From Callorhinchus milii (Eukaryota), in assembly GCF_018977255.1 (NCBI RefSeq), contig NW_024705390.1, forward strand, positions 1-49,152: a stretch of 49,152 nucleotides of DNA, read 5' to 3'. The notes below the pieces were generated by a model. The model had not been told where the DNA came from and ran no database searches. It saw only the letters and a program-made list of their open reading frames with translations. The translations under genes and the position numbers were made by a program. Numbering within the stretch: the stretch's first letter is position 1; the number at the start of each line of letters is the position of its first letter. Shown one piece after another: positions 4,407 to 48,434 of the stretch.

Positions 4407-7400
4407 CCTGCGGTTGATCATCGGGGACTTGGCCGCTTTCTTCACCTGTTACCAGAAACAGATGTCAGAGTCAGACCGTCAATGTCTGTAGGTTACAGTC
4501 AGACAGTCACAGGGAAAATGCCTGTATGTCACAGTCAGACAGGAAACGCCTGTGCATTACAGTCAGACAGAAATTGCTGTACATTGTAGGGTTTGACAGT
4601 GAGGTGAGCAGAGAACACGTCACACACGTCCACTTGCAGAGTGTAGTCTGACCCGGTGTACAGCCGCACTGTTATTCACTTACTGGATGGACGGTTGTAC
4701 TGGTGAGTCCCGGGTCCTGTCAATAAACAGACGTCAATTACACACAGACCCAGTGATGCTCGTTCAGCCCTCAAACACACACACATACACACACACACAC
4801 ACAACAGTCAGTTACACACACAGAGACAACACACACATATATAAAACCCAATCTCACACATACAGACAACAGCCGGTCTCACACTCTCACACACAACACT
4901 CAGTAACACAGACAGACAGTGACAGGTGTGGGGCTCAGTGAACCGCAGGACCAATGATGTGATAATTATAATTATAAAACACTGGTTAGGCCTCAACCAC
5001 AGACTGTGGTCAGTTCTGGGCCCCACACTGTAGGGTTAGGGTTAGTTAGAGACTGTGTTCAGTTCTGGGCCCCACACTGTAGGGTTAGAGTTAGTTAGAG
5101 ACTGTGTTCAGTTCTGGGCCCCACACTGTAGGGTTAGGGTTAGTTAGAGACTGTGGTCAGTTCTGGGCCCCACACTGTAGGAAGGATGTCAAGGCATTGG
5201 AGAGTGTGCAAAGGAGATTGACCGCGATGGCACCAGGAATGAGGGCTTCAGTTATCAGGAGAGGCCACAGACGTGAGGATTGTTCTCCTTGGAGCAGAGA
5301 AGGTTCAGAGGAGACTCCAGAAGTTTTGAAAATGATGAGGGGATTCGATAGGGGGAACAAGGAGACACTATTCCCACTGGCGGGTAGGACGGTAACCCCA
5401 GGACACCCATTCAAAATAGTTGTTAAAAGAAACAGAGTGGAGGGGAGGAGACATTTTTATCAGACGCGAGTTGTTGGGATCTGGAATGTATTGCCTGAAA
5501 GGCTGATGGGAGCTGATCAGGGCTATGGGGGGAGAGCGGGGGAGTGGGGTTGATCAGGGCTATGGGGGGAGAGCGGGGGAGTGGGGTTGATCAGGGCTAT
5601 GGGGGGAGAGCGGGGGAGTGGGGTTGATTTGTATCGCACTTTTCAAAGAGACAGACACGATGGGCTGAATGGCCTCCTTCTGTGCTGTATAATTCTATGA
5701 TTCTCTCTGATGATCGGCTCCCGCGACAGTGCCATTTATTCACCTTTTCGCTCTCGTTTTCTTTTCCAGAAGAGAATCCCCACAATCCCAGACACCAGCA
5801 AAGCCCCGATGATGAGGCCCAGGATCCAGGAAGTGGAACCGGCCGGAGTTCTCCCTGTTTTCCCATCTGTTCGGAGTGAACAACAACCAAACTTTCATTA
5901 AGGTCCTGAGAGCGAGAGAGGAGCGGAGTCTGAGAGAGGGAGAGGGTCAGACGATGAGAAGAGACAAACGAGAGAGAATGAGAGAGAGAGAGAGAGAGAG
6001 AGATCTGAAGAGTATTGGAGGACGGGAAGAGAGAGAGGTGAGGAGTATGAGAGAATATTGGAGAACGGGATGAGAAGGGGCGATGGGCGGCTGTTTAGAG
6101 TAGACAGAGAGTTCTCCCGGAGACAGACTGACACCTCATGTTATTCCCGGTTTCCCGCTGTGACCTTATGTGTGTGGATGACCTATGTATGTGGTTGACA
6201 CCCAATCCTCCTCCAGCTGTGACTCCAGATCCCTGATGTCCTGTCAGTTTGTTTGTCAGACATCAAGGACTGGTTGAGCGTAAACTTCCTGTAGCTGAAC
6301 ATCAACAAGACAGAAGCCATACTCCTTGGCTCCCATCGTGTCTCCTGTGGCTCTGACCTCCTCAACCTCCCTGTCCTTTGCCTAAGACTTACTGAACCTG
6401 TACATAACCTGAGCGTCAGCTTCGACCCTCAGCTGTCCTTCCTCCCCCACATCCGGTCCCTGACCAGGACCACTTTCCTCCACCTCCTCCACATTGCCCA
6501 CCTCCGACCTTACCTCACACCCAACACAACCAAAACCCTTGTCCATGTGTTTGTCACCTCCCACCTTGACTATTCCAATGCCCTCCTCTCTGGTCTCCCC
6601 AACCTCACTATCCACAGACCCCAACTAATCCAGAACTCCACCGCCCGTATAACCACCCGCTCGACACACCTCACCCCATCACCCCCATCACCCCCATCAC
6701 CCCGGCCCTCACCAGGCGCCACCGGCTCCCTATCAGAGACACCATCCACTTCAAGATCCTCACACTTGTCTACACGTCCCCGGCACCTCCTTAGTTTCCC
6801 AACCTTTCCTACTCCTCACTCCACCACCCGCCCCCTCCGCTCGGTTGGCTCCGGCCTCCTGCTTGTACCTCGTCCCTTCTGCTCCACCATCAGTGGCTGA
6901 GCTGACAGCCACTACGGTCTGAAACTCTGCAAATCCTTCCCTCAATCCCTCCACATTGCCCCCTCCTTCCCCATTTTCACATCACACCTGAAGACCTTCC
7001 TCTCTGACTGTGCTTACGGTCCCCTCCCCCTCCCCCTGTGTCAGCCCCACCACTGTTAAGTGCTCGAGACGCTGCCCCGTGTGAGGTTGCTGTGTAAACC
7101 CGAGTTGTTGTTGTTGATCTTACCCCACGGCACCTCCAACACCCCCTGGAGGCTGCTGTGCTCCACCAGACAGGAGAAGCCCTGCTCCCCCGCGGAGCCC
7201 GTCTCCAGCTCCATCTGCTTCACTGTCTGAAAGGTGTGGTCGTGGTTGGGTAATACACCGCTGGACTCCACCTCGTGGACAGTGTTGCCGTCCCTTGTCC
7301 AGGTCACCTCGATGGGCCGCGGATAGAAGCCAGTAACAAGACAGGAGAGAAGGGCTCTCCCCCCCACGTCCCTCCTGTAACTGACTGAGACGTCAGGGCG

Positions 7401-13844: not shown

Positions 13845-13910
13845 CCAATGGGAGGATCTCGGGAGCTGCTCCCAACTTGTCTCCAGGTAAAAGGCCTGAA
13901 ATAGGTGACC
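13845..13910 (-). promoter_or_regulatory. Divergent S-X-Y promoter module inside the inverted block
   Basis: Reverse strand: cacctat (S-like), ccttttacctggagac (X1), X2 altered to gttggg, cccattgg (Y). Confidence 0.65.
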
Positions 13911-14649: not shown

Positions 14650-17600
14650 AGCCTGAGGTGTTGAGATGTTTTGTTACGCTGATATCGGAGGACAACAATT
14701 TTCCGGAGTATCTCGTTGCTGTGATGTTGGAGGATGTTCAGATCTATCACTATGAGAGCAACAGTCGGACAATTGTCATCCGGATTCCCAGTGTACAGAC
14801 GGCTGTTAATGATCATCACTTCAACATATATCTAGAAATATGGAAGTTAGTTCATACGACAATGAAGGAGAATATGCTGTATATGATGGAGAGCAGAAAT
14901 ATCACGAGCGGTGAGTGGTTTAATATTCCCTGTGAACATCCAGCACTGTTCACTGTGTGCGTGTGAGTGTGTGAGAGAGAGAATGTGTGTGTGTGTGAGT
15001 GTGAGACAGTCGGTGATGGACAGACACACTCTGCGCTGATCACAATGGCTGTCAATGGCTATTTCAGGGATTCACTATGTCCAGGTGTTGTCTGGCTGTG
15101 AGGTGAGGGAGGACGGCACTACAGACGGACACCTCACAGTCGCGTTCGATGGTGAAGATTTTCTCAGCTTTGACAAAAACGACCTGAGATGGATTTCTGC
15201 TGTTCCCGAGGCTCAGACCCTGAGACAGAAACTGGAAAATCAGACAGACATGAATAAGTATTTGAAACAGGACCTGGAGAATGATTGTCCGACTCGGATG
15301 GAGGAATACTATCAGCGTTCAAAATCCGCCTTCCAGAGACAGAGTGAGTGTGTGTTGTTACTAATATAAAATCACAGAATCATGTGGCAACTTGTGGCTG
15401 CGGATCACCAACCTTATTTGCCTCATTCCGTGCCTTACGCACACGTACTCCCAAACTGCCTTTGTCTGCACAGCATTTCTTGCTGTCCGATCGCTCCTGT
15501 TTCTGGAATCTTTATTCTCCCCAGTCCTCGCCAGGCGCCACTGCTCCCAGTCACCGAACAGATCAACTTCAAGATCCTCTCACTCGTTGTCAAATCACCT
15601 CCTGCCCTCGCGCCTCCCTATCTCTGTGATTTGCTTGTCCTCCACTCCACCACCCGCTGCCTCCGCTCGGCTGGCTCCAGCCTCCTGATTGTCCCTCGGC
15701 CCCTCCGCTCTGCCATGGGTTGCCGTGCCTTTGGATACCACACCCCGAAACTCTGGAACTCTCTACGCACCATCCCAGACTCACGTCTGCGGATGCAGAA
15801 ACGCCTGTCAAGCCCCCGATTAACAAATCACATATGACAACTGCATTTGGGATTCGATCATTCCCTATATGACCTTATTATATGGTTAAGCCTCGCTGTG
15901 TCAGGGTGGGCTCAGTGCTGAGCTGTGTGTGACTGTGCTCCCCTCCCCAGGCCGCCCTGACGTCTCAGTCAGTTACAGGAGGGACGTGGGGGGGAGAGCC
16001 CTTCTCTCCTGTCTTGTTACTGGCTTCTATCCGCGGCCCATCGAGGTGACCTGGACAAGGGACGGCAACACTGTCCACGAGGTGGAGTCCAGCGGTGTAT
16101 TACCCAACCACGACCACACCTTTCAGACAGTGAAGCAGATGGAGCTGGAGACGGGCTCCGCGGGGGAGCAGGGCTTCTCCTGTCTGGTGGAGCACAGCAG
16201 CCTCCAGGGGGTGTTGGAGGTGCCGTGGGGTAAGATCAACAACAACAACTCGGGGTTACACAGCAACCTCACACGGGGCAGCGTCTCGAGCACTTAACAG
16301 TGGTGGGGCTGACACAGGGGGAGGGGGAGGGGACCGTAAGCACAGTCAGAGAGGAAGGTCTTCAGGTGTGATGTGAAAATGGGGAAGGAGGGGGCAATGT
16401 GGAGGGATTGAGGGAAGGATTTGCAGAGTTTCAGACCGTAGTGGCTGTCAGCTCAGCCACTGATGGTGGAGCAGAAGGGACGAGGTATAAGCAGGAGGCC
16501 GGAGCCAACCGAGCGGAGGGGGCGGGTGGTGGAGTGAGGAGTAGGAAAGGTTGGGAAACTAAGGAGGTGTCGGGGACGTGTAGACAAGTGTGAGGAACTT
16601 GAAGTGGATGTGGTCTCTGATAGGGAGCCGGTGGCGCCTGGTGAGGGCCGGGGTGATGGGGGTGATGGGGGTGATGGGGGTGAGGTGTGTCGAGCGGGTG
16701 GTTATACGGGCGGTGGAGTTCTGGATTAGTTGGGGTCTGTGGATAGTGAGGTTGGGGAGACCAGAGAGGAGGGCATTGGAATAGTCAAGGTGGGAGGTGA
16801 CAAACACATGGACAAGGGTTTTGGTTGTGTTGGGTGTGAGGTAAGGTCGGAGGTGGGCAATGTGGAGGAAAGTGGTCCTGGTCAGGGACCGGATGTGGGG
16901 GAGGAAGGACAGCTGAGGGTCGAAGCTGATGCTCAGGTTATGTACAGGTTCAGTAAGTCTTAGGCAAAGGACAGGGAGGTTGAGGAGGTCAAAGCCACAG
17001 GAGACATACATGGGTCATCAGCATAAATAAGGTCACAGCGGGAAACAGGAATAACATGAGGTGTCAGTCTGTCTCCGGGAGATCTCTCTGTCTTCTCTAA
17101 ACAGCCGCCCATCGCCCCTTCTCATCCAACATTCTCTCATACTCCTCACCTCTCTCTCTTCCCATCCTCCAATACTCTGCAGATCTCTCTCTCTCACTTG
17201 TTGCTTTCTCTCTTCTCGCCCTCTGACCCTCTCCCTCTCTCAGACTCCGCTCCTCTCTCGCTCTCAGGACCTTAATGAAAGTTTGGTTGTTGTTCACTCC
17301 GAACAGATGGGAAAACAGGGAGAACTCCGGCCGGTTCCACTTCCTGGATCCTGGGCCTCATCATCGGGGCTTTGCTGGTGTCTGGGATTGTGGGGATTCT
17401 CTTCTGGAAAAGAAAACGAAAGAAAAAAGATGAATGGCACTGTCGCGGGAACCGATTATCAGAGAGAATCATAGAATTATACAGCACAGAAGGAGGCCAT
17501 TCAGCCCATCGTGTCTGTCTCTTTGAAAAGTGCGATACAAATCAACCCCACTCCCCCGCTCTCCCCCATAGCCCTGATCAACCCCACTCCCCCGCTCTCC

Positions 17601-25394: not shown

Positions 25395-25460
25395 CACAAC
25401 CTGTTTCAGAGCCTTTTCCCGGAGACCCGTTACGAGCGGCTCCCGAGATCCTCCCATTGG
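25395..25460 (+). promoter_or_regulatory. S-X-Y class I promoter module, copy C
   Basis: caacctgtttcagagccttttcccggagacccgttacgagcggctcccgagatcctcccattgg, 137 bp before the ATG. Confidence 0.75.
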
Positions 25461-25596
25461 CGGTGAGTGAGTCAGTGTGAGATCAGTCAGAGAGGGAGTG
25501 AGTGAGATCAGAGAGGCCTTAGGGCTGAGGTCCGGTTGGACACCATCAGTGTGAGGTCCAGTGTTGGGCACATTGCAGTGACCATCCAACAGGACC

Positions 25597-28500
25597 ATGA
25601 AGGTCCTTGTGATGGCTCTCGCTGCCCTCCTGCCTGTGTGCAGTGCGCTCCACAGTAAGTGGCCCCAGACTCTGACTGTCACTGTGTGTTATAGTATATT
25701 CTGTGTATTTTGGGGGGTGCGGAGGGGGAGATTGGAGCAGAGATTGCAGCGGAGTTCCTTTTCTCAGTCTGTCACCATTCACTGACACTGTACTCTTCCC
25801 TTCCGTGTGTACACTGTGAGCTGTGCCCTGTGTGTACACTGTGAGCTGTGCCCTGTGTGTACACTGTGAGCTGTGCCCTGTGTGTACACTGTGAGCTGTG
25901 CCCTGTGTGTACGCTGTGCCTTGTGTGTACACTGTGAGCTGTGCCCTGTGTGTACACTGTGAGCTGTGCCGTGTGTATACACTGTGAGCTGTGCCCTGTG
26001 TGTACACTGTGAGCTGTGCCCTGTGTGTACACTGTGAGCTGTGCCGTGTGTGTACACTGTGAGCTGTGCCCTGTGTGTACACTGTGAGCTGTGCCGTGTG
26101 TGTACACTGTGAGCTGTGCCCTGTGTGTACACTGTGAGCTGTGCCCAGTGTGTACACTGTGAGCTGTGCCCTGTGTGTACACTGTGCCCTGTGTGTACAC
26201 TGTGAGCTGTGTGGGCATTTGACAGTTGCGAGCGTGTGCTGTATGTGACAAGTGTGTGTGAAGCGTGTGAACAGTATGTACTCAGTGACCTGTTACACAC
26301 GTACAATCAGTGTGTGTGTTTGTGTCTGACAGAGCCTCAGGTGTTGAGATACTTACACACACTGGTGTCAGCGGACGGAGAACTTCCAGAGTACTACTGT
26401 GCTGTGATGTTGGAGGATGTTGAGATCTATCACTACGACAGCAACAGTGAGAGAATTGTCAGTCGGATTCCCGGTGTTCAGACGGCTGTTAGAGAACAGC
26501 GCTTCCCTGTACGTGTGGAGAGGGTGAAGGCAGATTATATGACGGTGAAGGAGAATATGTTGTATATGATGAAGAGGAGGAATATTACGAGCGGTGAGTG
26601 GTTTAATATTCACTGTAAACATCCAGCGCCGTTCACTGTGTGTGTGTGTTGAGTACATGTGAGTGTGTGTGTGTCTTTGTCATTGTGTGTTTGTGTGAGT
26701 TTCCGTGTATCTGTGTGAGTGTGTGTTTGTGGGTGTGTTGAGTACATGTGAGGGAGACGAGGTGTGTGTCTCTGTCATTGTGTGTGCGGTGTGTGTTTGT
26801 GGTGTACAAGTGTGAGGGGGAGTCAGTGAGTGTTTTTTTCTCTTTGTCAGTGAGTGTGTGAGACAGTCGGTGATGGACAGACACACTCTGCACTGATCAC
26901 AATGGCTGTCAATGGCTATTTCAGGGGCTCACTATGGCCAGGTGTTGTCTGGCTGTGAGGTGAGGGAGGACGGCACTACAGACGGACACATCACAGTCGC
27001 GTTCGATGGGGAAGATTTTCTCAGCTTTGACAAAAACGACCTGAGATGGATTTCTGCTGCTCCCGAGGCTCAGACCCTGAGACGGAAACTGGACAACGAC
27101 AGAGACATGAATCAGTATTGGAAACAGAAACTGGAGAATGATTGTCTTAATCGGATGGAGGAATACTATCAGTATTCAAAGTCCACCTTCCAGCGACAGA
27201 GTGAGTGTGTGTTGTTACTAATATGGCCTTATTATATGGTTAAGCCTCGCTGTGTCAGGGTGGGCTCAGTGCTGAGCTGTGTGTGACTGTGCTCCCCTCC
27301 CCAGGCCGCCCTGACGTCTCAGTCAGTTACAGGAGGGACGTGGGGGGGAGAGCCCTTCTCTCCTGTCTTGTTACTGGCTTCTATCCGCGGCCCATCGAGG
27401 TGACCTGGACAAGGGACGGCAACACTGTCCACGAGGTGGAGTCCAGCGGTGTATTACCCAACCACGACCACACCTTTCAGACAGTGAAGCAGATGGAGCT
27501 GGAGACGGGCTCCGCGGGGGAGCAGGGCTTCTCCTGTCTGGTGGAGCACAGCAGCCTCCAGGGGGTGTTGGAGGTGCCGTGGGGTAAGATCAACAACAAC
27601 AACTCGGGGTTACACAGCAACCTCACACGGGGCAGCGTCTCGAGCACTTAACAGTGGTGGGGCTGACACAGGGGGAGGGGGAGGGGACCGTAAGCACAGT
27701 CAGAGAGGAAGGTCTTCAGGTGTGATGTGAAAATGGGGAAGGAGGGGGCAATGTGGAGGGATTGAGGGAAGGATTTGCAGAGTTTCAGACCGTAGTGGCC
27801 GTCAGCTCGGCCACTGATGGTGGAGCAGAAGGGACGAGGTATAAGCAGGAGGCCGGAGCCAACCGAGCGGAGGGGGCGGGTGGTGGAGTGAGGAGTAGGA
27901 AAGGTTGGGAAACTAAGGAGGTGCCGGGGACGTGTAGACAAGTGTGAGGATCTTGAAGTGGATGTGTTCTCTGAGTCCTGTGGAGTCCTGTAGCTCAGTG
28001 GTTAGAGCACTCGCTTTGCAAGCGAGAGACCTGAGTTCAATTCCAGGCAGAGGGCGAAACCTCGGGCAAGTTTCCTTACTCCACACAGAGCCTAATAATA
28101 ATCCCTCCAAAAAACCAAAAACAATATAATAAAATTGGTCATTTTCAATCTACGACTGTTTGTGGGACATTGCTGTGCGCAATTGGCTGCCGCGTTCGCC
28201 CTCAAATATACAGTCAATTCACTTTACAGTATATTCTGTGAAGCGCTTTGGGACGTCCTCCCGACGTGAAAAGCGCTATATCAAATGCAAGGATTATTAT
28301 TATTATTATTATAGGGAGCCAGTGGCGCCTGGTGAGGGCCGGGGTGATGGGGGTGATAGGTGTGATGGGGGTGAGGTGTGTCGAGCGGGTGGTTATACGG
28401 GCGGTGGAGTTCTGGATTATTTGGGGTCTGTGGATAGTGAGGTTGGGGAGACCAGAGAGGAGGGCATTGGAATAGTCAAGGTGGGAGGTGACAAACACAT

Positions 28501-31500
28501 GGACAAGGGTTTTGGTTGTGTTGGGTGTGAGGTAAGGTCGGAGGTGGGCAATGTGGAGGAAAGTGGTCCTGGTCAGGGACCGGATGTGGGGGGGGAAGGA
28601 CAGCTGAGGGTCGAACCTGACGCTCAGGTTATGTACAGGTTCAGTGAGTCTAAGGCAAAGGGCGGTGAGGTTGAGGAGGTCATAGCCACAGGAGACACGA
28701 TGGGAGCCAAGGAGTATGGCTTCTGTCTTGTTGATGTTCAGCTACAGGAAGTTTACGCTCAACCAGTCCTTGATGTCTGACAAACAAACTGACAGGACAT
28801 CAGGGATCTGGAGTCACAGCTGGAGGAGGATTGGGTGTCAACCACATACATAGGTCATCCACACACATAAGGTCACAGCGGGAAACCGGGAATAACATGA
28901 GGTGTCAGTCTGTCTCCGGGAGAACTCTCTGTCTTCTCTAAACAGCCGCCCATCGCCCCTTCTCATCCCGTTCTCCAATATTCTCTCATACTCCTCACCT
29001 CTCTCTCTTCCCGTCCTCCAATACTCTGCAGATCTCTCTCTCTCTCGATTTGCATTCTCTCATCTCGTCCTCTGACCCTCTCCCTCTCTCAGACTCCTCT
29101 CCTCTCTCACTCTAATGTTGCTGTTCACTCCGAACAGATGGGAAAACAAAGAAAACTCCGTCCGGTTCCACTTCCTGGATCCCGGGCCGGATCATTTTGC
29201 AGGCGTCTGGGATTGTTGTTGGGATTCTCGTCTGAAAATGAGAAAAGGTGAATAAATGGGACCGTCGCGGAGGCCGATTATCAGAGAGAACCACAGAATC
29301 ATACAGCATAGGAGGAGGCCATTCAGCCCATCGTGTCTGTTCCAGCTCTTTGAAAAGTGCTATCAAAATCAACCCCACTCCCCCGCTGTCTCCCCATAGC
29401 CCTGATCAACCCCACTCCCCCGCTCTCTCCCCATAGCCCTGATCAACCCCACTCCCCCGCTCTCTCCCCATAGCCCTGTTCAACCCCACTCCCCCGCTCT
29501 CTCCCCATAGCCCTGTTCAACCCCACTCCCCCGCTCTCTCCCCATAGCCCTGATCAACCCCACTCCCCCGCTCTCTCCCCATAGCCCTGATCAACCCCAC
29601 TCCCCCGCTCTCTCCCCATAGCCCTGATCAACCCCACTCCCCGCTCTCTCCCCATAGCCCTGATCAACCCCACTCCCCCGCTCTCTCCCCATAGCCCTGA
29701 TCAGCTTCCAACAGCCTTTCAGGCAACACATTCCAAATCCCAACAACTCGCTTCTGATAAAATGTCTCCTCCCCTCCCCTCTGTTTCAGGCCTTTATCAC
29801 TGGTCCACACCTTTATCCCCTCAAGGCTGGACTATGGGAACTCTCCCCTCGTCGGCCTTCCCGGCCCTCCCTCCACACGGCAGGTCATTCAGAACTCTGC
29901 AGCTCATGTATTGTCCCGCACCAGACACCGCGCACACATCACTCCCACCCTCGCCCTCACCCTCACTCCCACCCTCGCCCTCACTCCCACCCTCGCTCGC
30001 CTACACTGGCTCCCCATCCTCCAGTGGATCGAATTCAAGATCCTCATCGTCACCTACAAGGCCATTCACAGCCTCGCTCCCTCCTACCTCTCCAACCTAC
30101 TATCCCCCTACCTACCTGCCTGTACCCTCCGTTCCTCTGGCTCCGGTCTGCTCTACGTCCCCCGCCCCAACCGCCCGACCATCTGTGGCCTTCAGCCTCT
30201 CAGCCCCGAGGCTCTGGAACTCCATCCCCAGTGCCTTTGCCGCTTCCTCCCTTTCCTCCTTCAAGGCCGGTCTCAAGACCTTTCTCTTTGACCTTCAGCC
30301 TTCAGCTCCGCTCTCGACTCTCTACCCCCTCCTCACCCCCTCCCTTCCCTCTCCTCACCATGACCATCTCCCCCCTCCTCGCTCCTCCCCTTCCCTCACC
30401 ATTTCCCCCCCTCCTCGCTCCCTCCCTTCCCCCCCCTCACCCTGACCATCTCTCCCATCCTCTCTCCCTCCCTCCCCTCACTCTGACCATTTCCCCCCAA
30501 TGCTCGGGTCCTGACCCAACTGTACAGCGCCTTCGGACGTCCTCCTGATGTGAAAGGCGCTCTATAAATGGAATCTTGTTGTTCTTGTTGTTTCTTTTAA
30601 CAGCTATTTTAAGTCGGTGTCCTCGGGTTACCGACCCACGCGCCAGTGGGAATAGTGTCTCCTTGTACCCCCTATCGAATCCCCTCATCATTTTCAAAAC
30701 TTCTAGAGTCTCCTCTGCTCCAAGGAGAATAATCCTCGCGTCTGTGGCCTCCTGATAACTGAAGCCCTCATTCCTGGTGCCATCGCGGTCAATCTCCTTT
30801 GCACACTCTCCAATGCCTTGACATCCTTCCTACAGTGTGGGGCCCAGAACTGAACACAGTCTCTAACTAACTCTAACCCTACAGTGTGGGGCCCAGAACT
30901 GAACAGTCTCTAACTAACCCAAACCCTATAGTGTGGGGCCCAGAACTGAACACAGTCTGTGTCTCAGGCGTAACCAGTGTTTTATAATTATAACATCACT
31001 GGTCCTGTGGTTCACTGACCCCCACACCCGTCACTGTCTGTCTGTGTTACTGGGTGTTGTGTGTGTGTGACTGTGAGACCGGCTGTTGTCTGTATATGTG
31101 AGACCGGGTTTTATATGTGTGTTGTCTCTGTGTGTGTAACTGACTGTTGTGTGTGTGAGGGCTGAACGAGCATCACTGGGTCTGTGTGTAATTGACGTCT
31201 GTTTATTGACAGGACCCGGGACTCACCAGTACAGCCGTCCATCCAGTAAGTGAATAACAGTGCGGCTGTACACCGGGTCAGACTACACTCTGCAAGTGGA
31301 CGTGTGTGACGTGTTCTCTGCTCACCTCACTGTCAAACCCTACAATGTACAGCAATTTCTGTCTGTCTGACTGACTGTCTGACTGTAATGTACAGGCGTT
31401 TCCTGTCTGACTGTGACATACAGGCATTTTCTCTGTGACTGACTGACTATAACATAGAGATATTGACTGTCTGACTCTGACTCCATCTTTCATCTGTTTC

Positions 31501-32531
31501 TGGTCACAGGTGAAGAAAGCGGCCAATCATCCAATGGTCAATTAACAGGTAAGAGCCGGTCAGCGCCACACGGCCTCTCGTGATCCCCAGTCACTAACCC
31601 GCTGTGAGGATCAGGACTGGGCTGTGACAGTGCCACTGGGGGAGTGGAATCCCCCCCCACCCCCCCCCCGCGCTCACCGGGGACGTCCTTCCTGAGACCA
31701 GGAAGTGATCCCAGTGAAGCTCACAGGGTATTGGCCATCCAGTGCCCACTGGCACCGGGGCCCTGGCACTGAGCGGGTTACCACTGGCCACTGGCGCAGC
31801 CACGCGGCCCACTCGGCTCCTGTTATCCTGCGGCCAAAGCCCTGAGGGGTCGGGCAGTCCTCGCTGGACAAGCAGCGGGAAGCTGCCAGACAGGGCTCTC
31901 AGGGGCAAAGCTGTGGGTTTAGTGGGTTAGACTCCAGCAGTTACCCCAACGCACACTCTGGGTCCCCTCCAAACCACTCACACTCACACACACTCACACA
32001 CACTCACTCACACTCACACACACACACTCTGGGTCCCCCCCAAACCACTCACACACACTCACTCACTCACACACACTCGGGGTCCCCAAGCCTTGGCTCT
32101 GGCCAACCCTCTCCAGGGTCAGGTAAACACCATGTGTCCTGCACAGAGAGAGAGAGAGCACTCCATCCCAGACACGGGGAGAGATCCGTGTGGAGGTGAC
32201 ATACACACGTGTGACTCTCAGGCCTGGTTTGGGGACTGTTAAGCACAGTGATGGTTTCCACGTGTGTCAGACACGCGGCTGATCACAGTGATGGTTTCCA
32301 CGTGTGTCAGACACGCGGCTGATCACAGTGATGGTTTCCACGTGTGTCAGACACGCGGCTGATCACAGTGATGGTTTCCACGTGTGTCAGACACGCGGCT
32401 GATCACAGTCCGTTGTCTCTGTGTGTGACCCGGTGATTGGGGACTTAATGACCGTCACTGGTCTCTGTTTGTGAGTGACCTCTGTTTGATTACAGAACCT
32501 GGGAGTCTCCAGTCCCACCGTCCATCAGTCA
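25597..32531 (+). CDS. MHC class I-like heavy chain, copy C, with truncated TM (stop 29233-29235). Exons: leader 25597-25654, alpha1 26333-26593, alpha2 26925-27200, alpha3 27305-27583, TM 29138-29247, cyt1 31213-31245, cyt2 31510-31548, cyt3 32496-32531, probable last exon from 32621
   Basis: Leader through alpha3 are intact with canonical splice sites. The TM exon translates DGKTKKTPSGSTSWIPGRIILQASGIVVGILV*. Confidence 0.9.
27975..28310 (+). mobile_element. Young full-length tRNA(Ala-TGC)-derived SINE with L2-type tail, private to copy C
   Basis: A-box tagctcagtggttaga, anticodon arm ctcgc-tttgcaa-gcgag, B-box gagttcaattc, body ttgctgtgcgcaattggctgccgcgtt, and tail gcgctttgggacgtcc...gcgctatatcaaatgcaagg(att)n. 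The empty site ctctga/tagggag is seen in A, B and D. Confidence 0.92.
29789..30595 (+). mobile_element. 5'-truncated L2 LINE insertion, private to intron 5 of copy C
   Basis: Encodes LARLHWLPILQWIEFKILIVTYKAIHSLAPSYLSNLL..LRSSGSGLL and ends cagcgccttcggacgtcc...aaaggcgctctataaatggaatcttgttg. It is flanked by tgtttc on both sides; the empty site is seen in B. Confidence 0.85.
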
Positions 32532-35546: not shown

Positions 35547-38500
35547 ATGAAGGTCCTTGTGATGGCTCTCGCTGCCCTCCTGCCTGTGTGCAGTGCGCTC
35601 CACAGTAAGTGGCCCCAGACTCTGACTGTCACTGTGTGTTATAGTATATTCTGTGTATTTTGGGGGGTGCGGAGGGGGAGATTGGAGCAGAGATTGCAGC
35701 GGAGTTCCTTTTCTCAGTCTGTCACCATTCACTGACACTGTTCTCTTCCCTTCCGTGTGTACACTGTGAGCTGTGCCCTGTGTGTACACTGTGAGCTGTG
35801 CCCTGTGTGTACACTGTGAGCTGTGCCCTGTGTGTGCACTGTGAGCTGTGCCCTGTGTGTACACTGTGAGCTGTGCCCTGTGTGTACACTGTGCCCTGTG
35901 TGTACACTGTGAGCTGTGCCCTGTGTGTACACTGTGAGCTGTGCCCTGTGTGTACACTGTGAGCTGTGCCCTGTGTGTACACTGTGAGCTGTGCCCTGTG
36001 TGTACACTGTGAGCTGTGCCCTGTGTGTACACTGTGAGCTGTGCCCTGTGTGTATGCTGTGCCCTGTGTGTACGCTGTGCCCTGTGTGTACGCTGTGCCC
36101 TGTGTGTACACTGTGCCCTGTGTGTACGCGGTGCCCTGTGTGTACGCGGTGCCCTGTGTGTACGCGGTGCCCTGTGTGTACCCGGTGCCCTCTGTGTGCA
36201 CTGTGAGCTGTGCCGTGTGTACGCGGTGCCCTGTGTGTACGCGGTGCCCTGTGTGTACGCGCTGCCCTGTGTGTACGCGGTGAGCTGTGTGTACACTGTA
36301 CGCTGTGCCCTGTGTGTACACTGTGCCCGATTTCTCCAACCGAACCCCCTACTACCCTGTTCACACCCTGCGTTCAGCGGGCTCCGGCCTGCTTCACCTG
36401 CCCGCCTCGCTCCCGCGACTATTGGCGGGTGGGCCTTCCCGCCACTCTGCCCCCACCCTCTGGAACTCCATCCCGCAGTCCCTCCGCCTCGCACCCTCCC
36501 TCGAGCCCTCCCTCGCCATCTTCAAGACTCACCTCTGGACCCTCCTCTTTGACCGTGCTTTCAATCTCCTGCTACCCCCCTTGCCCTTCACCCTCCTCCA
36601 CCCCGACCCCCGGCTCGGGTGTGTAACTCTGTCTGTCCAGCGCCTTGGAACATCCTCCCGACATGAAAAGCGCTTTACACATGTAATTTTGTGGTGGTGG
36701 TTGTTGTTATAGTTATTTCTCTGTTACAGCACCGAAGGAGACCATTGGCCATTTGTGCCTGTGCCGGTTTGGGGCTGGGAGGGGAGGGGGGGGCGGTGGG
36801 GGTGCAGGGGCTGAGGGGTGAGTGGCTGAGGGAGTGGGGCTGATGTGGAGGGTTTGACGCGGAGGGGATGAGGGGCACAGATATTGAACCTGGGTTCCTT
36901 TTCTCTGTCTGTGAGATTGCTCTCGTTCCCTCCGTGTGTTCACTGTGAGCTCTGTGCGCTGCTGTTGTATTATTGTCATTCCAGAGATGGACACAATACT
37001 CCAACTGAGCCCCAACCAGTGATTTCTAAAGATTTAGCAAAACTTCTTTGCTTTGTACTCTGTGCCTCTATATATAAAGCCAAGGATCCCATAGGCCTTT
37101 TTAACAGTGTGTCGTGTCGTGTCCTGCCACCTTCAAAGGTTCGAGCACGTGAACCCCCAGGTCTCTCGGTTCCTGCACCCCATTTAAAATGATACCATTT
37201 ATCTCGCAATATCTCTCCTCATTCCTCCTGACAAAGAGACTGACACACAGAGAGACAGACACATACACACACAGACTGAGACAAACAGAGACAGACACAA
37301 AGACAGACATACTGAAAACTGACACCGAAAGGCAGAGAGAGAGAGTGAGAGGATGTGTTGTGTGGATGTGATGGACACTCACTCACACAGAGCCACAAAC
37401 CGCCAAACACAAATCGCAGCGGAAGCTTTTACCCGGAGCCACTTTGCCAACGTTTCAAAAGGGAATTGGAAGGCACTTGAAAAGGAAATCATTGGAAGGC
37501 TTTGGGGAGAGGGAAGGGTTGAATATCAAGACCAGCCGATAGGTGTGTGAGATCAGTGAGTGAGAGAGAGTCAGTGTGTGTGGAGTCGCCGAGTGACAGA
37601 GTCAGTGTGTGAGCAGAGTGTCTGATTGAGCTGTGCCCTGTGTGTACACTATGCCCTGCGTGTGCACCGTGCCCTGCGTGTGCACCGTGCCCTGCGTGTG
37701 CACTGTGCCCTGCGTGCGCACTGTGCCCTGCGTGCGCACTGTGCCCTGCGTGCGCACTGTGCCCTGCGTGTACACACTGAGGTGTGTTTACACTCTGAGA
37801 TTTGCCCTGTGTGTACACTGTCTCCTGTGTGTATACTGTGAGCTGTGCCCTGTGTGTACACTATGAGCTAATTGCGCTCTGCATGCGTACTGTGATGTGC
37901 GTTTGCACTGTGTTTGTGAGTGTATACTGTGAGTTGTGTGTACACTTTGAGCTGTGTGTACACTGTGCCCTGGGTACGCAGTGTCCGATCATCCAAAACT
38001 CTGCAGCTCGTGTACTCTCACCACCAGACTCCGTGACCCCATCACTCCCACCCTCGCCCGACCCCACTGGCTCCCCACCCCCCAGAGGATCGAGTTCAAG
38101 ATCCTCGTCCTCACCTTTAAGGTCACCTTGTTGTTGTCCTGCATGTACACTGTGCCCTGGCTATAAACTGGGCCCTGTGTGTACACTGTGTCCTGCGTGG
38201 ATAATGTGAGCTGTGTGTGCACTGATCTGTGTGCTCTGTGCCCTGTGTGTACACTGTGAGCTGTGCCCTGTGTGTACACTGTGAGCTGTGCCCTGTGTGT
38301 ACACTGTGCCCTGTGTGTACACTGTGTCCTGTGTGTACACTGTGAGCTGTGTGGGCATTTGACAGTTGCGAGCGTGTGCTGTATGTGACAAGTGTGTGTG
38401 AAGCGTGTGAACAGTATGTACTCAGTGACCTGTTACACACGTACAACCAGTGTGTGTGTTTGTGTCTGACAGAGCCTCAGGTGTTGAGATTCTTACAAAC

Positions 38501-41500
38501 ACTGGTGTCAGCGGACGGAGAACTTCCAGAGTACTACTGTGCTGCGATGTTGGATGATGTTGAGATCTATCACTACGACAGCAACAGTGAGAGAATTGTC
38601 AGTCGGATTCCCAGTGTACAGACGGCTGTTAGAGAACAGCGCTTCCCTATACGTGTGGAGGAGGTGAAGACAGATTATATGTGGTTGAAGGAGAAAATGT
38701 TGTATATGATGAAGAGCAGGAATATTATGAGCGGTGAGTGGTTTAATATTCTCAGTGAACATCCAGCACCGTTCACTGTGTGTGAGTGTGTGTGTTGAGA
38801 ACGTGTGTGAGGGAGAGTGAGTGTGTGTGAGTGTCTCTGTGATTATGTGTGTGAGTGTGTGAGACGGTCGGTGATGGACAGACACACTCTGCGCTGACAC
38901 AATGGCTGTCAATGGCTATTTCAGGGGCTCACTATGCCCAGGCGATAACTGGCTGTGAGGTGAGGGAGGACGGCACTACAGACGAACACTTCACAGTCGC
39001 ATTCGATGGTGAAGATTTTCTCAGCTTTGACAAAAACGACCTGAGATGGATTTCTGCTGTTCCCGAGGCTCAGACCCTGAGACAGAAACTGGACAACGAC
39101 AGAGACATGAATCAGGATTGGAAACAGGTCCTGGAGAATGATTGTCCTACTTGGATGGAGGAATACTATCAGTATTCAAAGTCCACCTTCCAGCGACAGA
39201 GTGAGTGTGTGTTGTTACTAATATGGCCTTATTATATGGTTAAGCCTCGCTGTGTCAGGGTGGGCTCAGTGCTGAGCTGTGTGTGACTGTGCTCCCCTCC
39301 CCAGGCCGCCCTGACGTCTCAGTCAGTTACAGGAGGGACGTGGGGGGGAGAGCCCTTCTCTCCTGTCTTGTTACTGGCTTCTATCCGCGGCCCATCGAGG
39401 TGACCTGGACAAGGGACGGCAACACTGTCCACGAGGTGGAGTCCAGCGGTGTATTACCCAACCACGACCACACCTTTCAGACAGTGAAGCAGATGGAGCT
39501 GGAGACGGGCTCCGCGGGGGAGCAGGGCTTCTCCTGTCTGGTGGAGCACAGCAGCCTCCAGGGGGTGTTGGAGGTGCCGTGGGGTAAGATCAACAACAAC
39601 AACTCGGGTTACACAGCAACCTCACACGGGGCAGCGTCTCGAGCACTTAACAGTGGTGGGGCTGACACAGGGGGAGGGGGAGGGGACCGTAAGCACAGTC
39701 AGAGAGGAAGGTCTTCAGGTGTGATGTGAAAATGGGGAAGGAGGGGGCAATGTGGAGGGATTGAGGGAAGGATTTGCAGAGTTTCAGACTGTAGTGGCTG
39801 TCAGACAAGTGTGAGGATCTTGAAGTGGATGGTCTCTCTGATAGGGAGCCAGTGGCGCCTGGTGAGGGCCGGGGTGATGGGGGTGATGGGGTGAGGTGTG
39901 TCGAGCGGGTGGTTATACGGGCGGTGGAGTTCTGGATTAGTTGGGGTCTGTGGATAGTGAGGTTGGGGAGACCAGAGAGGAGGGCATTGGAATAGTCAAG
40001 GTGGGAGGTGACAAACACATGGACAAGGGTTTTGGTTGTGTTGGGTGTGAGGTAAGGTCGGAGGTGGGCAATGTGGAGGAGGTGGAGGAAAGTGGTCCTG
40101 GTCAGGGACCGGATGTGGGGGAGGAAGGACAGCTGAGGGTCGAACCTGACGCTCAGGTTATGTACAGGTTCAGTGAGTCTAAGGCAAAGGGCGGTGAGGT
40201 TGAGGAGGTCAGAGCCACAGGAGACACGATGGGAGCCAAGGAGTATGGCTTCTGTCTTGTTGATGTTCAGCTACGGGAAGTTTACGCTCAACCAGTCCTT
40301 GATGTCTGACAAACAAACTGACAGGACATCAGGGATCTGGAGTCACAGCTGGAGGAGGATTGGGTGTCAACCACATACATAGGTCATCCACACACATAAG
40401 GTCACAGCGGGAAACCGGGAATAACATGAGGTGTCAGTCTGTCTCCGGGAGAACTCTCTGTCTACTCTAAACAGCCGCCCATCGCCCCTTCTCATCCCAT
40501 TCTCCAATATTCTCTCATACTCCTCACCTCTCTCTCTTCCCGTCCTCCAATACTCTGCAGATCTCTCTCTCTCTCTCTCACTTGTTGCTTTCTCTCTTCT
40601 CATCCTCTGACCCTCTCCCTCTCTCAGACTCCGCTCCTCTCTCACTCTCAGGACCTTAATGAAAGTTTGGTTGTTGTTCACTCCGAACAGATGGGAAAAC
40701 AGGGAGAACTCCGGCCGGTTCCACTTCCTGGATCCTGGGCCTCATCATCGGGGCTTTGCTGGTGTCTGGGATTGTGGAGATTCTCGTCTGGAAAAGAAAA
40801 CGAGAGCGAAAAGGTGAATAAATGGGACTGTCGCGGGAGCCGATTATCAGAGAGAATCATAGAATTATACAGCACAGAAGGAGGCCATTCAGCCCATCGT
40901 GTCTGTCTCTTTGAAAAGTGCGATACAAATCAACCCCACTCCCCCGCTCTCCCCCCATAGCCCTGATCAACCCCACTCCCCCGCTCTCCCCCCATAGCCC
41001 TGATCAACCCCACTCCCCCGCTCTCCCCCATAGCCCTGATCAACCCCACTCCCCCGCTCTCCCCCCATAGCCCTGATCAACCCCACTCCCCCGCTCTCCC
41101 CCGATCAACCCCACTCCCCCGCTCTCCCCCCATAGCCCTGATCAACCCCACTCCCCCGCTCTCTCCCCATAGCCCTGATCAACCCCACTCCCCCGCTCTC
41201 CCCCCATAGCCCTGATCAACCCCACTCCCCCGCTCTTCCCCATAGCCCTGATCAACCCCACTCCCCCGCTCTCCCCCATAGCCCTGATCAACCCCACTCC
41301 CCCGCTCTCCCCCCATAGCCCTGATCAACCCCACTCCCCCGCTCTCCCCCATAGCCCTGATCAACCCCACTCCCCCGCTCTCCCCCATAGCCCTGATCAA
41401 CCCCACTCCCCCGCTCTCTCCCATAGCCCTGATCAACCCCACTCCCCCGCTCTCCCCAAGCCCTGATCAACCCCCAGTGGGAATTCTCCTTGTTCCGCCT

Positions 41501-43365
41501 ATCGAATCCCCTCATCATTTTCAAAACTTCTGGAGTCTCCTCTGAACCTTCTCTGCTCCAAGGAGAATAATCCTCACGTCTGTGGCCTCTCCTGATAACT
41601 GAAGCCCTCATTCCTGGTGCCATCGCGGTCAATCTCCTTTGCACACTCTCCAATGCCTTGACATCCTTCCTACAGTGTGGGGCCCAGAACTGAACACAGT
41701 CTGTGTCTGAGGCGTAACCAGTGTTTTATAATAATAATTATCACATCACTGGTCCTGTGGTTCACTGACCCCCACACCCGTCACTGTCTGTCTGTGTTAC
41801 TGGGTGTTGTGTGTGAGAGTGTGAGACCGGCTGTTGTCTCTCTATGTGTGAGACCGGGTTTTATATGTGTGTGTTGTCTCTCTGTGTGTAACTGACTGTT
41901 GTGTGTATGTGTGTGTGTGTGTTTGAGGGCTGAACGAGCATCACTGGGTCTGTGTGTAATTGACGTCTGTTTATTGACAGGACCCGGGACTCACCAGTAC
42001 AGCCGTCCATCCAGTAAGTGAATAACAGTGCGGCTGTACACCGGGTCAGACTACACTCTGCAAGTGGACGTGTGTGACGTGTTCTCTGCTCACCTCACTG
42101 TCAAACCCTACAATGTACAGCAATTTCTGTCTGTCTGACTGACTGTCTGACTGTAATGTACAGGCGTTTCCTGTCTGACTGTGACATACAGGCATTTTCC
42201 CTGTGACTGACTGACTATAACATAGAGATATTGACTGTCTGACTCTGACTCCATCTTTTATCTGTTTCTGGTCACAGGTGAAGAAAGCGGCCAATCATCC
42301 AATGGTCAATTAACAGGTAAGAGCCGGTCAGCGCCACACGGCCTCTCGTGATCCCCAGTCACTAACCCGCTGTGAGGATCAGGACTGGGCTGTGACAGTG
42401 CCACTGGGGGAGTGGGGGAGTGAGTGAGGGAGTGAGGGACTGGGCTGTGACAGGGCCACTGGGGGAGTGGAATCCCCCCCCCCCATCCCCCCCCCCCCGC
42501 GCTCACCGGGGACGTCCTTCCTGAGACCGGGAAGTGATCCCAGTGAAGCTCACAGGGTATTGGCCATCCAGTGCCCACTGGCACCGGGGCCCTGGCACTG
42601 AGCGGGTTACCACTGGCCACTGGGGCAGCCACGCGGCCCACTCGGCTCCTGTTATCCTGCGGCCAAAGCCCTGAGGGGTCGGGCAGTCCTCGCTGGACAA
42701 GCAGCGGGAAGCTGCCAGACAGGGCTCTCAGGGGCAAAGCTGTGGGTTTAGTGGGTTAGACTCCAGCAGTTACCCCAACGCACACTCTGGGTCCCCCCCA
42801 AACCACTCACACTCACACACACACACTCACACACACACACACACACACACTCACACACACACACACACACACTCACACTCACTCACACACACTCGGGGTC
42901 CCCAAGCCTTGGCTCTGGCCAACCCTCTCCAGGATCAGGTAAACACCATGTGTCCTGCACAGAGAGAGAGAGAGAGAGAGCACTCCATCCCAGACACGGG
43001 GAGAGATCCGTGTGGAGGTGACATACACACGTGTGACTCTCAGGCCTGGTTTGGGGACTGTTAAGCACAGTGATGAGTTTGTGTGGGTCAGACACGCGGC
43101 TGATCACGGTGACGTGGGTCAGACACGCGGCTGATCGCGGTGACGTGGGTCAGACACGCGGCTGATCGCGGTGAAGTGGGTCAGACACGCGGCTGATCGC
43201 GGTGATGTGGGTCAGACACGCGGCTGATCGCGGTGACGGGTTTCCATGTGGGTCAGACACCCGGTGTGATGGACAGCACGAGGTCACAGCACATTGCCTG
43301 CAGATGGTGTGAGACTAACCAGGAGTTTGGGTGTATTTTTGTTCTCAGGAACCCGGAGCGAGTGA
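35547..43365 (+). CDS. MHC class I-like heavy chain, copy D. Exons: leader 35547-35604, alpha1 38473-38733, alpha2 38925-39200, alpha3 39305-39583, TM 40691-40813, cyt1 41981-42013, cyt2 42278-42316, probable terminal exon from 43349 (GTRSE*, stop 43363-43365)
   Basis: All exons are open with canonical splice sites. The terminal exon is inferred from the acceptor tttttgttctcag and is the least certain part. Confidence 0.88.
36330..36680 (+). mobile_element. L2 3' fragment in intron 1 of copy D
   Basis: Translates [46 protein letters not shown] and ends in the shared tail cagcgccttggaacatcc...gaaaagcgcttt. Confidence 0.75.
36985..37215 (-). mobile_element. CR1 RT fragment in intron 1 of copy D
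   Basis: The reverse strand gives [14 protein letters not shown]...[16 protein letters not shown]...LEYCVHLW across frameshifts. Confidence 0.8.
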
Positions 43366-43824
43366 GGAACGGAGAATGGAGGAGCGGAGCTGAGGGACTG
43401 AGAGGAGCACAAGCGAAGGCCTGAGGGTCCTGGTGTCTCCTTTGCTCTCAGTCACTGATTCTCTCTGAGCGTCACTGGTATAACAGCAGATTCTGTTCAC
43501 ACTGACGGTGCCTTATCACATCATTGAGACGTCTCAAGTGAAGTGAATTGACTGTATTTGTGGGCGAAACATCACATTTAAAAATTCAAGATTCTCTATT
43601 AATAGTAATATCAATAACACAATGATATAAAAATATAGAGAGTGTATCTCGGGAATTGTAGAAAACTGTTGGAGTACTGAGAGTCTGTGTCTCTGTCCCT
43701 CTCTCTCTGTCTCTCTCTCTGTCTCTGTGTGTGTCTCTCTCTCTGTGTCTCTCTGTCTTCCCGTTCCCCCNTCTGTATCTCTGTCCATCTGTGACACCAG
43801 TTGTCACCAGCAACTGGGGGAGGG

Positions 43825-45518: not shown

Positions 45519-48434
45519 CTTTTCGCTCTCGTTTTCTTTTCCAGAAGAGAATCCCCACAATCCCAGACACCAGCAAAGCCCCGATGATGAGGCCCAGGAT
45601 CCAGGAAGTGGAACCGGCCGGAGTTCTCCCTGTTTTCCCATCTGTTCGGAGTGAACAACAACCAAACTTTCATTAAGGTCCTGAGAGCGAGAGAGGAGCG
45701 GAGTCTGAGAGAGGGAGAGGGTCAGAGGGCGAGAAGAGAGAAACGAGAGAGAGAGAGATCTGCAGAGTATTGGAGGACGGGAAGAGAGAGAGGTGAGGAG
45801 TATGAGAGAATATTGGAGAATGGGATGAGAAGGGCGGATGGGCGGCTGTTTAGAGAAGACAGAGAGTTCTCCCGGAGACAGACGGACACCTCATGTTATT
45901 CCCGGTTTCCCGCTGTGACCTTATGTGTGTGGATGACCTATGTATGTGGTTGACACCCAATCCTCCTCCAGCTGTGACTCCAGATCCCTGATGTCCTGTC
46001 AGTTTGTTTGTCAGACATCAAGGACTGGTTGAGAGTAAACTTCCCGTAACACTTACTGAAAGGTCCCCTCCCCCTCCCCGTGTCAGCCCCACCACTGTTA
46101 AGTGCTCGAGACGCTGCCCCGTGTGAGGTTGCTGTGTAAACCCGAGTTGTTGTTGTTGATCTTACCCCACGGCACCTCCAACACCCCCTGGAGGCTGCTG
46201 TGCTCCACCAGACAGGAGAAGCCCTGATCCCCCGCGGAGCCCGTCTCCAGCTCCATCTGCTTCACTGTCTGAAAGGTGTGGTCGTGGTTGGGTAATACAC
46301 CGCTGGACTCCACCTCGTGGACAGTGTTGCCGTCCCTTGTCCAGGTCACCTCGATGGGCCGCGGATAGAAGCCAGTAACAAGACAGGAGAGAAGGGCTCT
46401 CCCCCCCACGTCCCTCCTGTAACTGACTGAGACGTCAGGGCGGCCTGGGGAGGGGAGCACAGTCACACACAGCTCAGCACTGAGCCCACCCTGACACAGC
46501 GAGGCTTAACCATATAATAAGGCCATATTAGTAACAACACACACTCACTCTGTCGCTGGAAGGTGGACTTTGAATACTGATAGTATTCCTCCATCCAAGT
46601 AGGACAGTCATTCTCCAGGACCTGTTTGCAATACTGATTGATGTCTGTGTCATTGTCCAGTTTCCGTCTCAGGGTCTGAGCCTCGGGAACAGCAGAAATC
46701 CATCTCAGGTCGTTTTTGTCAAAGCTGAGAAAATCTTCACCATCAAACGCCATTGTGAAGTGTTCGTATGTAGTGCCGTCCTCCCTCACCTCACAGCCAG
46801 TTATCGCCTGGGCATAGTGAGCCCCTGAAATAGCCATTGACAGCCATTGTGATCAGCGCAGAGTGTGTCTGTCCATCACCGACCGTCTCACACACTCACA
46901 CACATAATGACAGGGACACTCACACACACTCACTCTCCCTCACAGATGTAGTCAACACACACACACACACACAGTGAACAGTGCTGGATGTTCACAGGGA
47001 GTATTGAGCCACTCACCGCTCATAATATTCCTGCTCTTCATCATATACAACATTTTCTCCTTCAACGTCACATAATGTCTCTTCACCCCCTCTACATGTA
47101 CAAGGAAGTGCTGTTCTCTAACAGCCGTCTGTACACCGGGAATCCGACTGACAATTCTCTCACTGTTGCTGTCGTAGTGATAGATCTCAACATCCTCCAA
47201 CATCGCAGCACGACTGTACTCTGGAAGTTCTCCGTCCGCTGACACCAGTGTGTGTAACAATCTCAACACCTGAGGCTCTGTCAGACACAAACACACACAC
47301 TGATTGTACGTGTGTAACAGGTCACTGAGTACATACTGTTCACACACTTCACACACACTTGTCACATACAGCACACGCTCGCAACTGTCAAATGCCCACA
47401 CAGCTCACAGTGTACACACAGGGCACAGTGTACACACAGGGCACAGTGTACACACAGCTCACAGTGTACACACAGCTCACAGTGTACACACAGCTCACAG
47501 TGTACACACAGGGCACAGTCTACACACAGGACACAAGTGTACACACAGGGCACAGCTCACAGCGTACACACGTACACACAGCTCACAGCTCCCTGCAGCC
47601 CTGCGATGACTGTGAGCTCAGTCACGCTGTGGGGGGAGGGGGGGGGGTAGGAGGAGAGGGGTTCGCACCCCACAGCCCCTGTAGCTCAGGGGTTAGACCC
47701 CTCGCACCCCACAGCCCCTGTAGCTCAGGGGTTACACCCCTCCCCTCACCCCCACAGCCCCTGTAGCTCAGGGGTTAGACCCCTCCCCTCACCCCCACAG
47801 CCCCTGTAGCTCAGGGGTTAGACCCCTCACCCCACACCCCACAGCCCCTGTAGCTCAGCGGTTAGACCCCTCCCCTCACAAGGCAGAGGATGTGGGTTGG
47901 ATTCCCGAGTGGGACAGGACAGGGGGAAACCTTAGGCAGTTTCCTTACCCACCCCCACCCACACCCCACACCCCACCCCAGCCCCACCCCCCCACCCACA
48001 CACCCCCCCCCCCACACCCCCACCCCCCCCCCCACCCACCCCCAAGCCCACCCCCCCCCCCGCCACCCACCCCCACCCCCCACCCCCCCCCACCCACCCC
48101 CACCCCACCCACTCACGAACAGCAGTCAGTGGGAACCTGCAGCTCATCAAATGGTCGATCGCTTTTCCGGTGATGATCCCTTCGACCAAAATAGATTTTG
48201 ACCGAAAGATTCCGGTGGCTTCAGCCGCGGCTGTTTTCCCACAACACGTACGTACGGTCACTGCGCTGTCCTGCGAAGGGCTTTGCGACGTCTCAGGAGA
48301 CGTGAGAAGGCGCCGCGTCAAACGCGAGGATTATTATTAATATCACTATTATTGTGACAGTCCGACGGCCACTTACTTTGGAGCCCAAAGCACAAGGGCA
48401 GGAGGGCAGCGACAGCCGTCAGGAACAGCTTCAT
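45519..48434 (-). CDS. MHC class I-like heavy chain, copy E, lacking cytoplasmic exons. Exons: leader 48377-48434, alpha1 47017-47277, alpha2 46549-46824, alpha3 46166-46444, TM 45519-45641
   Basis: Open exons with canonical sites and the same leader as A. Homology to the other copies stops at 44574, about 43 nt before the cyt1 acceptor. Confidence 0.88.
47665..48340 (+). mobile_element. tRNA-derived SINE with five A-box units in intron 1 of copy E
   Basis: Paralogue of 8940-9420 with five units of ccctgtagctcaggggttaga. Confidence 0.8.

Follow-up and report, generated by a model that had tools for sequence, protein, structure and literature searches.

In the ULBP/RAET1 and CEACAM families, a stop in or near the transmembrane (TM) segment turns a type I protein into a glycosylphosphatidylinositol (GPI)-anchored one. 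Among class I genes of the major histocompatibility complex (MHC), the GPI switch of mouse Qa-2 is reported to go back to damage in exon 5 that leaves the cytoplasmic exons behind it untranslated, and H2-Q10 is said to be soluble through a TM-exon lesion, its hydrophobic segment having been lost by a frameshift. We analyzed the whole of MU250313.1, an unplaced scaffold in assembly GCA_018977255.1 of Callorhinchus milii (the window, 49,152 base pairs, bp), on which five copies (A to E) of one MHC class I gene are found. Copy C carries a premature stop in its connecting-peptide/TM exon (exon 5). This lesion is real and of the Qa-2/Q10 type, and its single most likely reading, which we put forward tentatively, is that the anchor exon of copy C has been decaying without constraint.

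In the mouse Qa-2 group, Q6 and Q8 encode transmembrane molecules and Q7 and Q9 GPI-linked ones, and a soluble form arises through the loss of exon 5 (PMC6292030). Like Qa-2, whose paralogue pairs differ in their anchor, copy C is a nonclassical class I gene among tandemly arranged near-duplicates. However, GPI linkage and expression were shown experimentally for Qa-2, whereas those of copy C are putative; copy C belongs to an unrelated lineage (at most 37% identity to non-chimaera class I) and has an exon 5 without sign of constraint. It also recalls H2-Q10 and the soluble class I molecules of the rat, in which a class Ib chain was made water-soluble, but differs from Q10 in retaining a 14-residue hydrophobic end. 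An initial annotation of this DNA had invoked both mouse precedents; the GPI linkage of Qa-2 and the solubility of Q10 are well founded, and the annotation traced the latter to lesions in the TM exon. In a survey of BALB/c mice, class I fifth exons diverged strongly between groups, a few of them with stops or frameshifts blocking the membrane span; that most variants retained connecting peptide, TM segment and basic anchor motif was read as a sign of selection (PMC2189523). Copy C differs from these variants in having lost the basic anchor motif. In Atlantic salmon, the class I gene Sasa-ULA is described as the gene of a soluble molecule (PMC2846915), but belongs to a teleost lineage. The ULBP/RAET1 and CEACAM genes follow the same general TM-to-GPI route as would copy C, but are different families. 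Literature searches for GPI-linked class I molecules in sharks or chimaeras returned nothing relevant.

The TM exon of copy C (coordinates in Table 1) was aligned with the four paralogous exons of 123 nucleotides (nt) of copies A, B, D, and E, all of which encode a C-terminal ...(G/E)IL(F/V)WKRKRERK. Flanked by AG (29136-29137) and GT (29248-29249), it reads in phase 1 as (G)AT for Asp, then GKTKKTPSGSTSWIPGRIILQASGIVVGILV, TGA, AAA, TGA, GAA, and AAG; the junction of the alpha3 exon with exon 5 gives ...ACAAAGAAAAC in copy C and ...ACAGGGAGAAC in the other copies. Eleven substitutions precede the stop, one of them common to copy D, together with a 6-nt deletion after position 29195 and a 3-nt insertion in the TTGTTGTTG run at 29213-29221. 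After the stop there is a 10-nt deletion following position 29241, and a further deletion of 18 nt, non-coding and also a multiple of three, lies in the intron just upstream of the acceptor. The same truncated product is present in RefSeq as XP_042202286.1, a protein of 323 residues that ends in ...GILV. The stop, the in-frame indels before it, and the 10-nt deletion and second TGA after it had all been described in the initial annotation, and the alignment confirmed them.

The lesion lies in an island where copy C diverges sharply from its paralogues. Within this island, 30 of 284 sites differed (10.6%), compared to 46 of 2019 (2.3%) in the surrounding introns (Fisher p = 8.6e-10). Copy C was 10.7-12.8% away from copies A, B, D, and E there, whereas these differed among themselves by 1.4-3.1%; immediately upstream of the island, copy C differed from A, D, and E by 2-4%, and from D by 0.5% at exons 6-7. 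Divergence was comparable in the exon (13 of 107 sites) and in the adjacent intron of the island (17 of 182 sites; p = 0.55, on small counts), and nonsynonymous and synonymous changes before the stop stood at 9:2, about 69% nonsynonymous being expected (p = 0.29, again on small counts). On these alignments, neither test rejects neutrality. Since exon and intron have diverged to the same degree and amino-acid changes are no rarer than expected, the anchor exon appears to be evolving without constraint; we infer that selection does not act on it, and hence that the tail probably lacks a selected function. The claim of the initial annotation that the frame upstream of the stop is still constrained was not borne out by these two comparisons. 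Nor do the in-frame indels on which it relied speak for constraint: two of them would arise by chance with p roughly 0.05-0.1, three of the four indels in the island are multiples of three, the non-coding 18-nt deletion included, and the 3-nt insertion sits in a TTG-repeat context.

We also simulated neutral outcomes by giving the ancestral exon the same stop and ten random substitutions and scoring the resulting end against a strict or a lenient GPI layout, with thresholds that were chosen after seeing copy C and that would bias the result, if at all, toward the GPI reading. With the stop in place, 17% of the simulated exons showed the strict layout and 35-40% the lenient one. The GPI look is weak evidence of design because the ancestral connecting peptide already contains A-G-S-T-S and a hydrophobic run; judging from the exon sequences, a late stop in that run would always yield a GPI-like end, which makes such a switch easy to evolve. 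Across the island, exon/intron, 9:2, indel, and simulation tests, no sign of selection making or keeping the tail survived. The preserved splice signals in the island were considered as an argument for constraint and rejected, one of 32 core positions being changed where about 3.4 changes would be expected (P about 0.15, not significant).

Under unconstrained decay, gene conversion would keep most of copy C near-identical to its neighbours, while an anchor segment of about 300 bp, between a CT-rich tract and a 37-bp minisatellite, would have escaped homogenisation and gathered about 11% divergence, four indels, and the Trp-to-stop change. Copy C would then be an anchor knock-out whose other exons stay open through conversion and not through selection on copy C, and its GPI-like look would be largely a by-product of what the ancestral exon contained. 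Homogenisation of this kind can be read from the cluster itself: the alpha3 exon (279 nt) has the same sequence in copies A to D, with copy E off by one base, and the segment 27305-27805 and its equivalents in A, B, D, and E (alpha3 plus about 220 nt of intron) differ by at most 0.5% between copies, compared to 6-27% for alpha1, a pattern that points to strong, localised gene conversion in the alpha3 region. Alternatively, the segment may have come in from a more distant paralogue that is not represented here; no donor of its sequence was found within the window. The 3' lesions of copies B and E (described below), the absence in copy C of a terminal exon, a stop in the range of nonsense-mediated decay (NMD), and the canonical end of V9KN34, the sole protein of the family derived from complementary DNA (cDNA), all count for decay.

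Several observations weigh against decay. The core acceptor and the donor of the TM exon itself are kept in copy C, as are its leader, alpha1 to alpha3 and every AG/GT site, and its promoter is 99.2% identical to that of copy D; RefSeq labels the gene protein-coding. Neither of the two indels that precede the stop shifts the frame, the tail agrees with the GPI layout position by position, and when two indels of random length were added to the simulations, GPI-like outcomes fell to only 5% (strict) or 8% (lenient). That a divergent island has persisted between homogenised flanks may in itself be a mark of selection. Mouse class I genes with exon 5 lesions, namely Qa-2 and Q10, are expressed and functional. 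As regards the intact remainder, no disabling lesion was detected in the other exons, splice sites or promoter of copy C (promoter and leader, 25399-25912, being the segment that matches copy D at 99.2%), an integrity that gene conversion could explain.

The strongest competitor to decay is a switch of the Qa-2 type, in which copy C would be expressed and its 323-residue chain cleaved at about Ser300 (S-G-S) and placed on a GPI anchor; we take it seriously but consider it less likely than decay. Three leucine replacements (L>P, L>R, and L>Q) and the two-residue deletion would have recast the initial third of the former helix as a polar spacer, leaving a 14-residue hydrophobic signal. The NetGPI paper gives the layout of such signals as a polar linker, a small omega residue, Gly, Ala, or Ser at omega+2, a spacer from omega+3 to about omega+9, and a hydrophobic run from about omega+10, and Ser is the omega residue at 27 of 50 verified sites. 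The linker of copy C is DGKTKKTP and is followed by S300-G301-S302 at omega to omega+2, that is, by the commonest verified omega residue and by Ser at omega+2. The spacer TSWIPGR (omega+3 to +9) has a mean hydropathy of -0.63, and the tail IILQASGIVVGILV runs for 14 residues from omega+10 to the C-terminus, uncharged and without cytoplasmic residues, with a mean hydropathy of 2.49. The truncated end thus shows every element of the published layout, as the initial annotation had proposed, although this resemblance is a match to a layout and not the output of a trained predictor. Copy C also has an N-terminal signal peptide, with a hydrophobic core and a c-region of small residues as read from the sequence. 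Its otherwise intact gene with a D-like promoter, the in-frame indels, and the mouse example of GPI-linked Q7/Q9 with a soluble form through exon 5 loss all favor the switch. Against it stand the exon without sign of constraint, a layout reached by chance in 17-40% of the neutral simulations, a tail on the short side that includes a Gln, a transcript that may face NMD, and the lack of a terminal exon. Whether or not the gene is used, which is a separate matter, a translated copy C chain would, going by its layout, most plausibly enter the GPI pathway. In its fullest form this reading would make copy C the first known GPI-anchored (and, by skipping of the exon, secreted) MHC class I molecule in cartilaginous fish, arisen independently of Qa-2 by the same exon 5 nonsense route, its island shielded from conversion by selection for the type of anchor; we regard this version, too, as a minority possibility.

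How the transcript is ended bears on this reading. The donor of exon 7 follows 84 nt after the stop, which would be in NMD range if the transcript were fully spliced, in agreement with the caveat of the initial annotation. An AATAAA hexamer directly after the TM exon, in the context GTGAATAAATGG, is a possible intronic poly(A) signal and could support short, tail-less messages; more speculatively, a message ending there would sidestep NMD.

Less probable, and in our view unlikely, is a switch to secretion, in which the chain would be soluble either because its 14-residue stub neither anchors it nor undergoes GPI processing, or because the exon is skipped. Skipping is possible as regards the frame, as had been noted before: the alpha3 exon ends in ...CCG TGG G and exon 6 begins with GA CCC, both in phase 1, so that removal of the TM exon keeps the frame, and exons 6 (33 nt) and 7 (39 nt) share the 1-1 phase of the TM exon. 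The mouse also has soluble class I molecules, namely Q10 and the Qa-2 form that lacks exon 5, and ULA of salmon is described as another. However, the sequence offers no reason for skipping: the last 16 nt of the intron before the TM exon of copy C are unchanged, the nearest change being T>C at 29121, 17 nt upstream, a branch-like CTAAT motif outlasts the 18-nt deletion, and the donor is likewise preserved. Moreover, uncleaved hydrophobic C-termini usually stay in the cell and are not secreted, which counts against a soluble chain. Copy-C-specific insertions in introns 4 and 5 were considered as a replacement TM exon and rejected, as they are dispersed repeats.

We think it very improbable that WIPGRIILQASGIVVGILV still spans the membrane as a tail-less TM anchor with its Arg near the outer face, in the manner of adaptor-pairing receptors. 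Its best 19-residue hydropathy window, at 1.68, is marginally over the classical threshold of 1.6, but canonical copies score 2.74; no more than 14 uncharged residues lie beyond the Arg, the segment contains Pro and Gly, and cytoplasmic stop-transfer residues are lacking. The longest stretch without charged residues and Pro measures 26 residues in the canonical exon but 14 in copy C, and this shortening together with the lower hydropathy makes a stable membrane span by the predicted tail unlikely. Least probable of all is an assembly or haplotype artefact, for although the scaffold (49 kb) is unplaced and repeat-rich and contains five near-identical units and a 25-N gap, the island consists of 30 mixed-type substitutions and four indels in clean unique sequence with no gap near, which is not the error pattern of collapsed repeats or of long reads.

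Searches of databases gave little on expression. A protein search with the alpha3 domain plus tail of copy C returned one unrelated UniRef fragment only, a blank that is uninformative as the database is apparently without RNA-derived chimaera sequences of this family, and an exact sequence look-up of copy C retrieved the genomic scaffold only. No other protein was found with a tail of the C type: among the 14 C. milii relatives listed, all those that reach the TM exon have a canonical anchor, and the cDNA-derived V9KN34 has a canonical anchor and tail. In a language-model atlas, the tail scored at most 0.80, mostly against C1-set fragments; a ULBP3 cluster, with a score of 0.70, was below the lead threshold and was not used.

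Table 1. Positions of the class I copies and of the features of copy C within the 49,152-bp window.
Feature	Coordinates	Strand	Remarks
Copy C connecting-peptide/TM exon	29138..29247	+	110 nt vs 123
Premature stop TGA, copy C	29233..29235	+	Ancestral TGG (Trp), G>A at 29235; ends the RefSeq coding sequence
Second in-frame TGA, copy C	29239..29241	+	A>T at 29239; 10-nt deletion directly after
AATAAA hexamer	29251..29256	+	4 nt into intron; in A, C, D, E, lost in B
Divergence island of copy C	29098..29390	+	About 300 bp; 30/284 sites; indels -18, -6, +3, -10
CT-rich low-complexity stretch	29059..29109		5' edge of island
37-bp minisatellite, copy C	29368..29703		9.1 copies; overlaps 3' edge of island (29368-29390)
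Copy C leader exon	25597..25654	+	Ends in phase 1
Copy C alpha1 exon	26333..26593	+	261 nt, open, AG/GT intact
Copy C alpha2 exon	26925..27200	+	276 nt, open
Copy C alpha3 exon	27305..27583	+	279 nt
Copy C cytoplasmic exon 6	31213..31245	+	33 nt, phase 1-1, intact; untranslated if TM exon included
Copy C cytoplasmic exon 7	31510..31548	+	39 nt, phase 1-1, intact; peptide identical to that of copy D
Copy A alpha1 exon	8247-7987	-	
Copy A TM exon	5744..5866	-	Intact comparator
Copy B alpha1 exon	14650-14910	+	
Copy B TM exon	17307..17429	+	Coding part intact, donor GT lost
Copy D leader exon	35547-35604	+	
Copy D TM exon	40691..40813	+	Intact comparator
Copy E alpha1 exon	47277-47017	-	
Copy E TM exon	45519..45641	-	Intact; duplicon stops before exons 6-7
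Other 37-bp minisatellite arrays	40929-41474, 17541-17837		
Other 37-bp minisatellite arrays	45072-45403, about 5514-5630	-	
Terminal coding exon	43349..43393	+	Only one in window; downstream of D, outside repeat unit

As shown in Table 1, the copies lie on both strands, and the cytoplasmic exons were located through the RefSeq models of copy D (XP_042202283-5). Exons follow the domains and are all of phase 1: a leader of 58 nt, alpha1 of 261, alpha2 of 276, alpha3 of 279, a TM exon of 123 (110 in copy C), and cytoplasmic exons of 33 and 39 nt. Alpha1 to alpha3 are open in all five copies, with canonical splice sites, and the sites of the TM exons are also canonical save for the donor of copy B. 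The products have both class I domains above the Pfam cut-offs, protein P0152 matching PF00129 (MHC_I) with 80 bits (cut-off 28.3) and PF07654 (C1-set) with 63 bits (cut-off 21). In a full-length protein search, identity to any non-chimaera class I protein was at most 37% among the matches listed, and because of this low identity the cluster is placed, on protein similarity, as a chimaera-specific nonclassical class I lineage that is not assigned to a named elasmobranch lineage. Two types of leader are present. The first, MKLFLTAVAALLPLCFGLQ, occurs at 9459-9515 and 48378-48434, both on the minus strand, and serves copy A; the second lies at 25597, at 35547, and, on the minus strand, at 13724, and serves copies C and D besides occurring in an inverted cassette. 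Their coexistence suggests two promoter lineages in the cluster. A 37-bp minisatellite (ATCAACCCCACTCCCCCGCTCTCTCCCCATAGCCCTG) is found 3' of every TM exon, with a copy number of about 3 to 15.

Damage at the 3' end is present elsewhere in the cluster. In copy B, a 4-nt deletion (17425-17437) abolishes the donor of the TM exon, which reads AAAAAG/ATGAATGG (AAAAAG/AT), and its RefSeq model XP_042202288.1 runs through into the intron; moreover, no leader exon is present on the strand of copy B, and the cassette closest to it (13580-13906) is inverted. At the 3' end of copy E (44574-45519), the unit stops before exons 6-7, and its RefSeq model ends as ...KRKRERKGE in the intron, so that, as modelled, copy E would give a TM form without a tail. 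For copy C, the assembly shows no equivalent of the terminal exon. The TM helix of copy D contains a Glu (GGG>GAG, 40777-40779, ...SGIVEILVW), a charged residue that recalls the Asp reportedly found in the TM segment of Qa-2, or adaptor-pairing receptors. Exon 7 is of 38 nt in copy A (4445-4408) and of 39 nt in copy D (42278-42316), and this 1-nt difference means that A-type and D-type messages would read the terminal exon in two frames, the A-type reading being that of the cDNA V9KN34 and the D-type one giving ...GTRSE and a stop. The terminal exon in the RefSeq model of copy A is not on the strand of copy A in this scaffold.

What the lesion means depends on whether copy C is expressed. If it is, lipid-anchored or soluble class I molecules would have arisen by the same exon 5 route in lineages more than 400 million years apart, and the chimaera would possess a class Ib cluster whose paralogues differ in membrane behaviour; should the GPI switch and its maintenance by selection hold true, the five-gene cluster would deliberately vary membrane attachment around one invariant alpha3 domain. 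If, as we tentatively favor, the anchor exon is decaying, gene conversion would be keeping the exons of a dead copy open while a repeat-bounded segment escapes, which would caution against taking an otherwise intact gene as proof of function in multigene families. Either way, XP_042202286.1 is to be read as an anchor-truncated chain.

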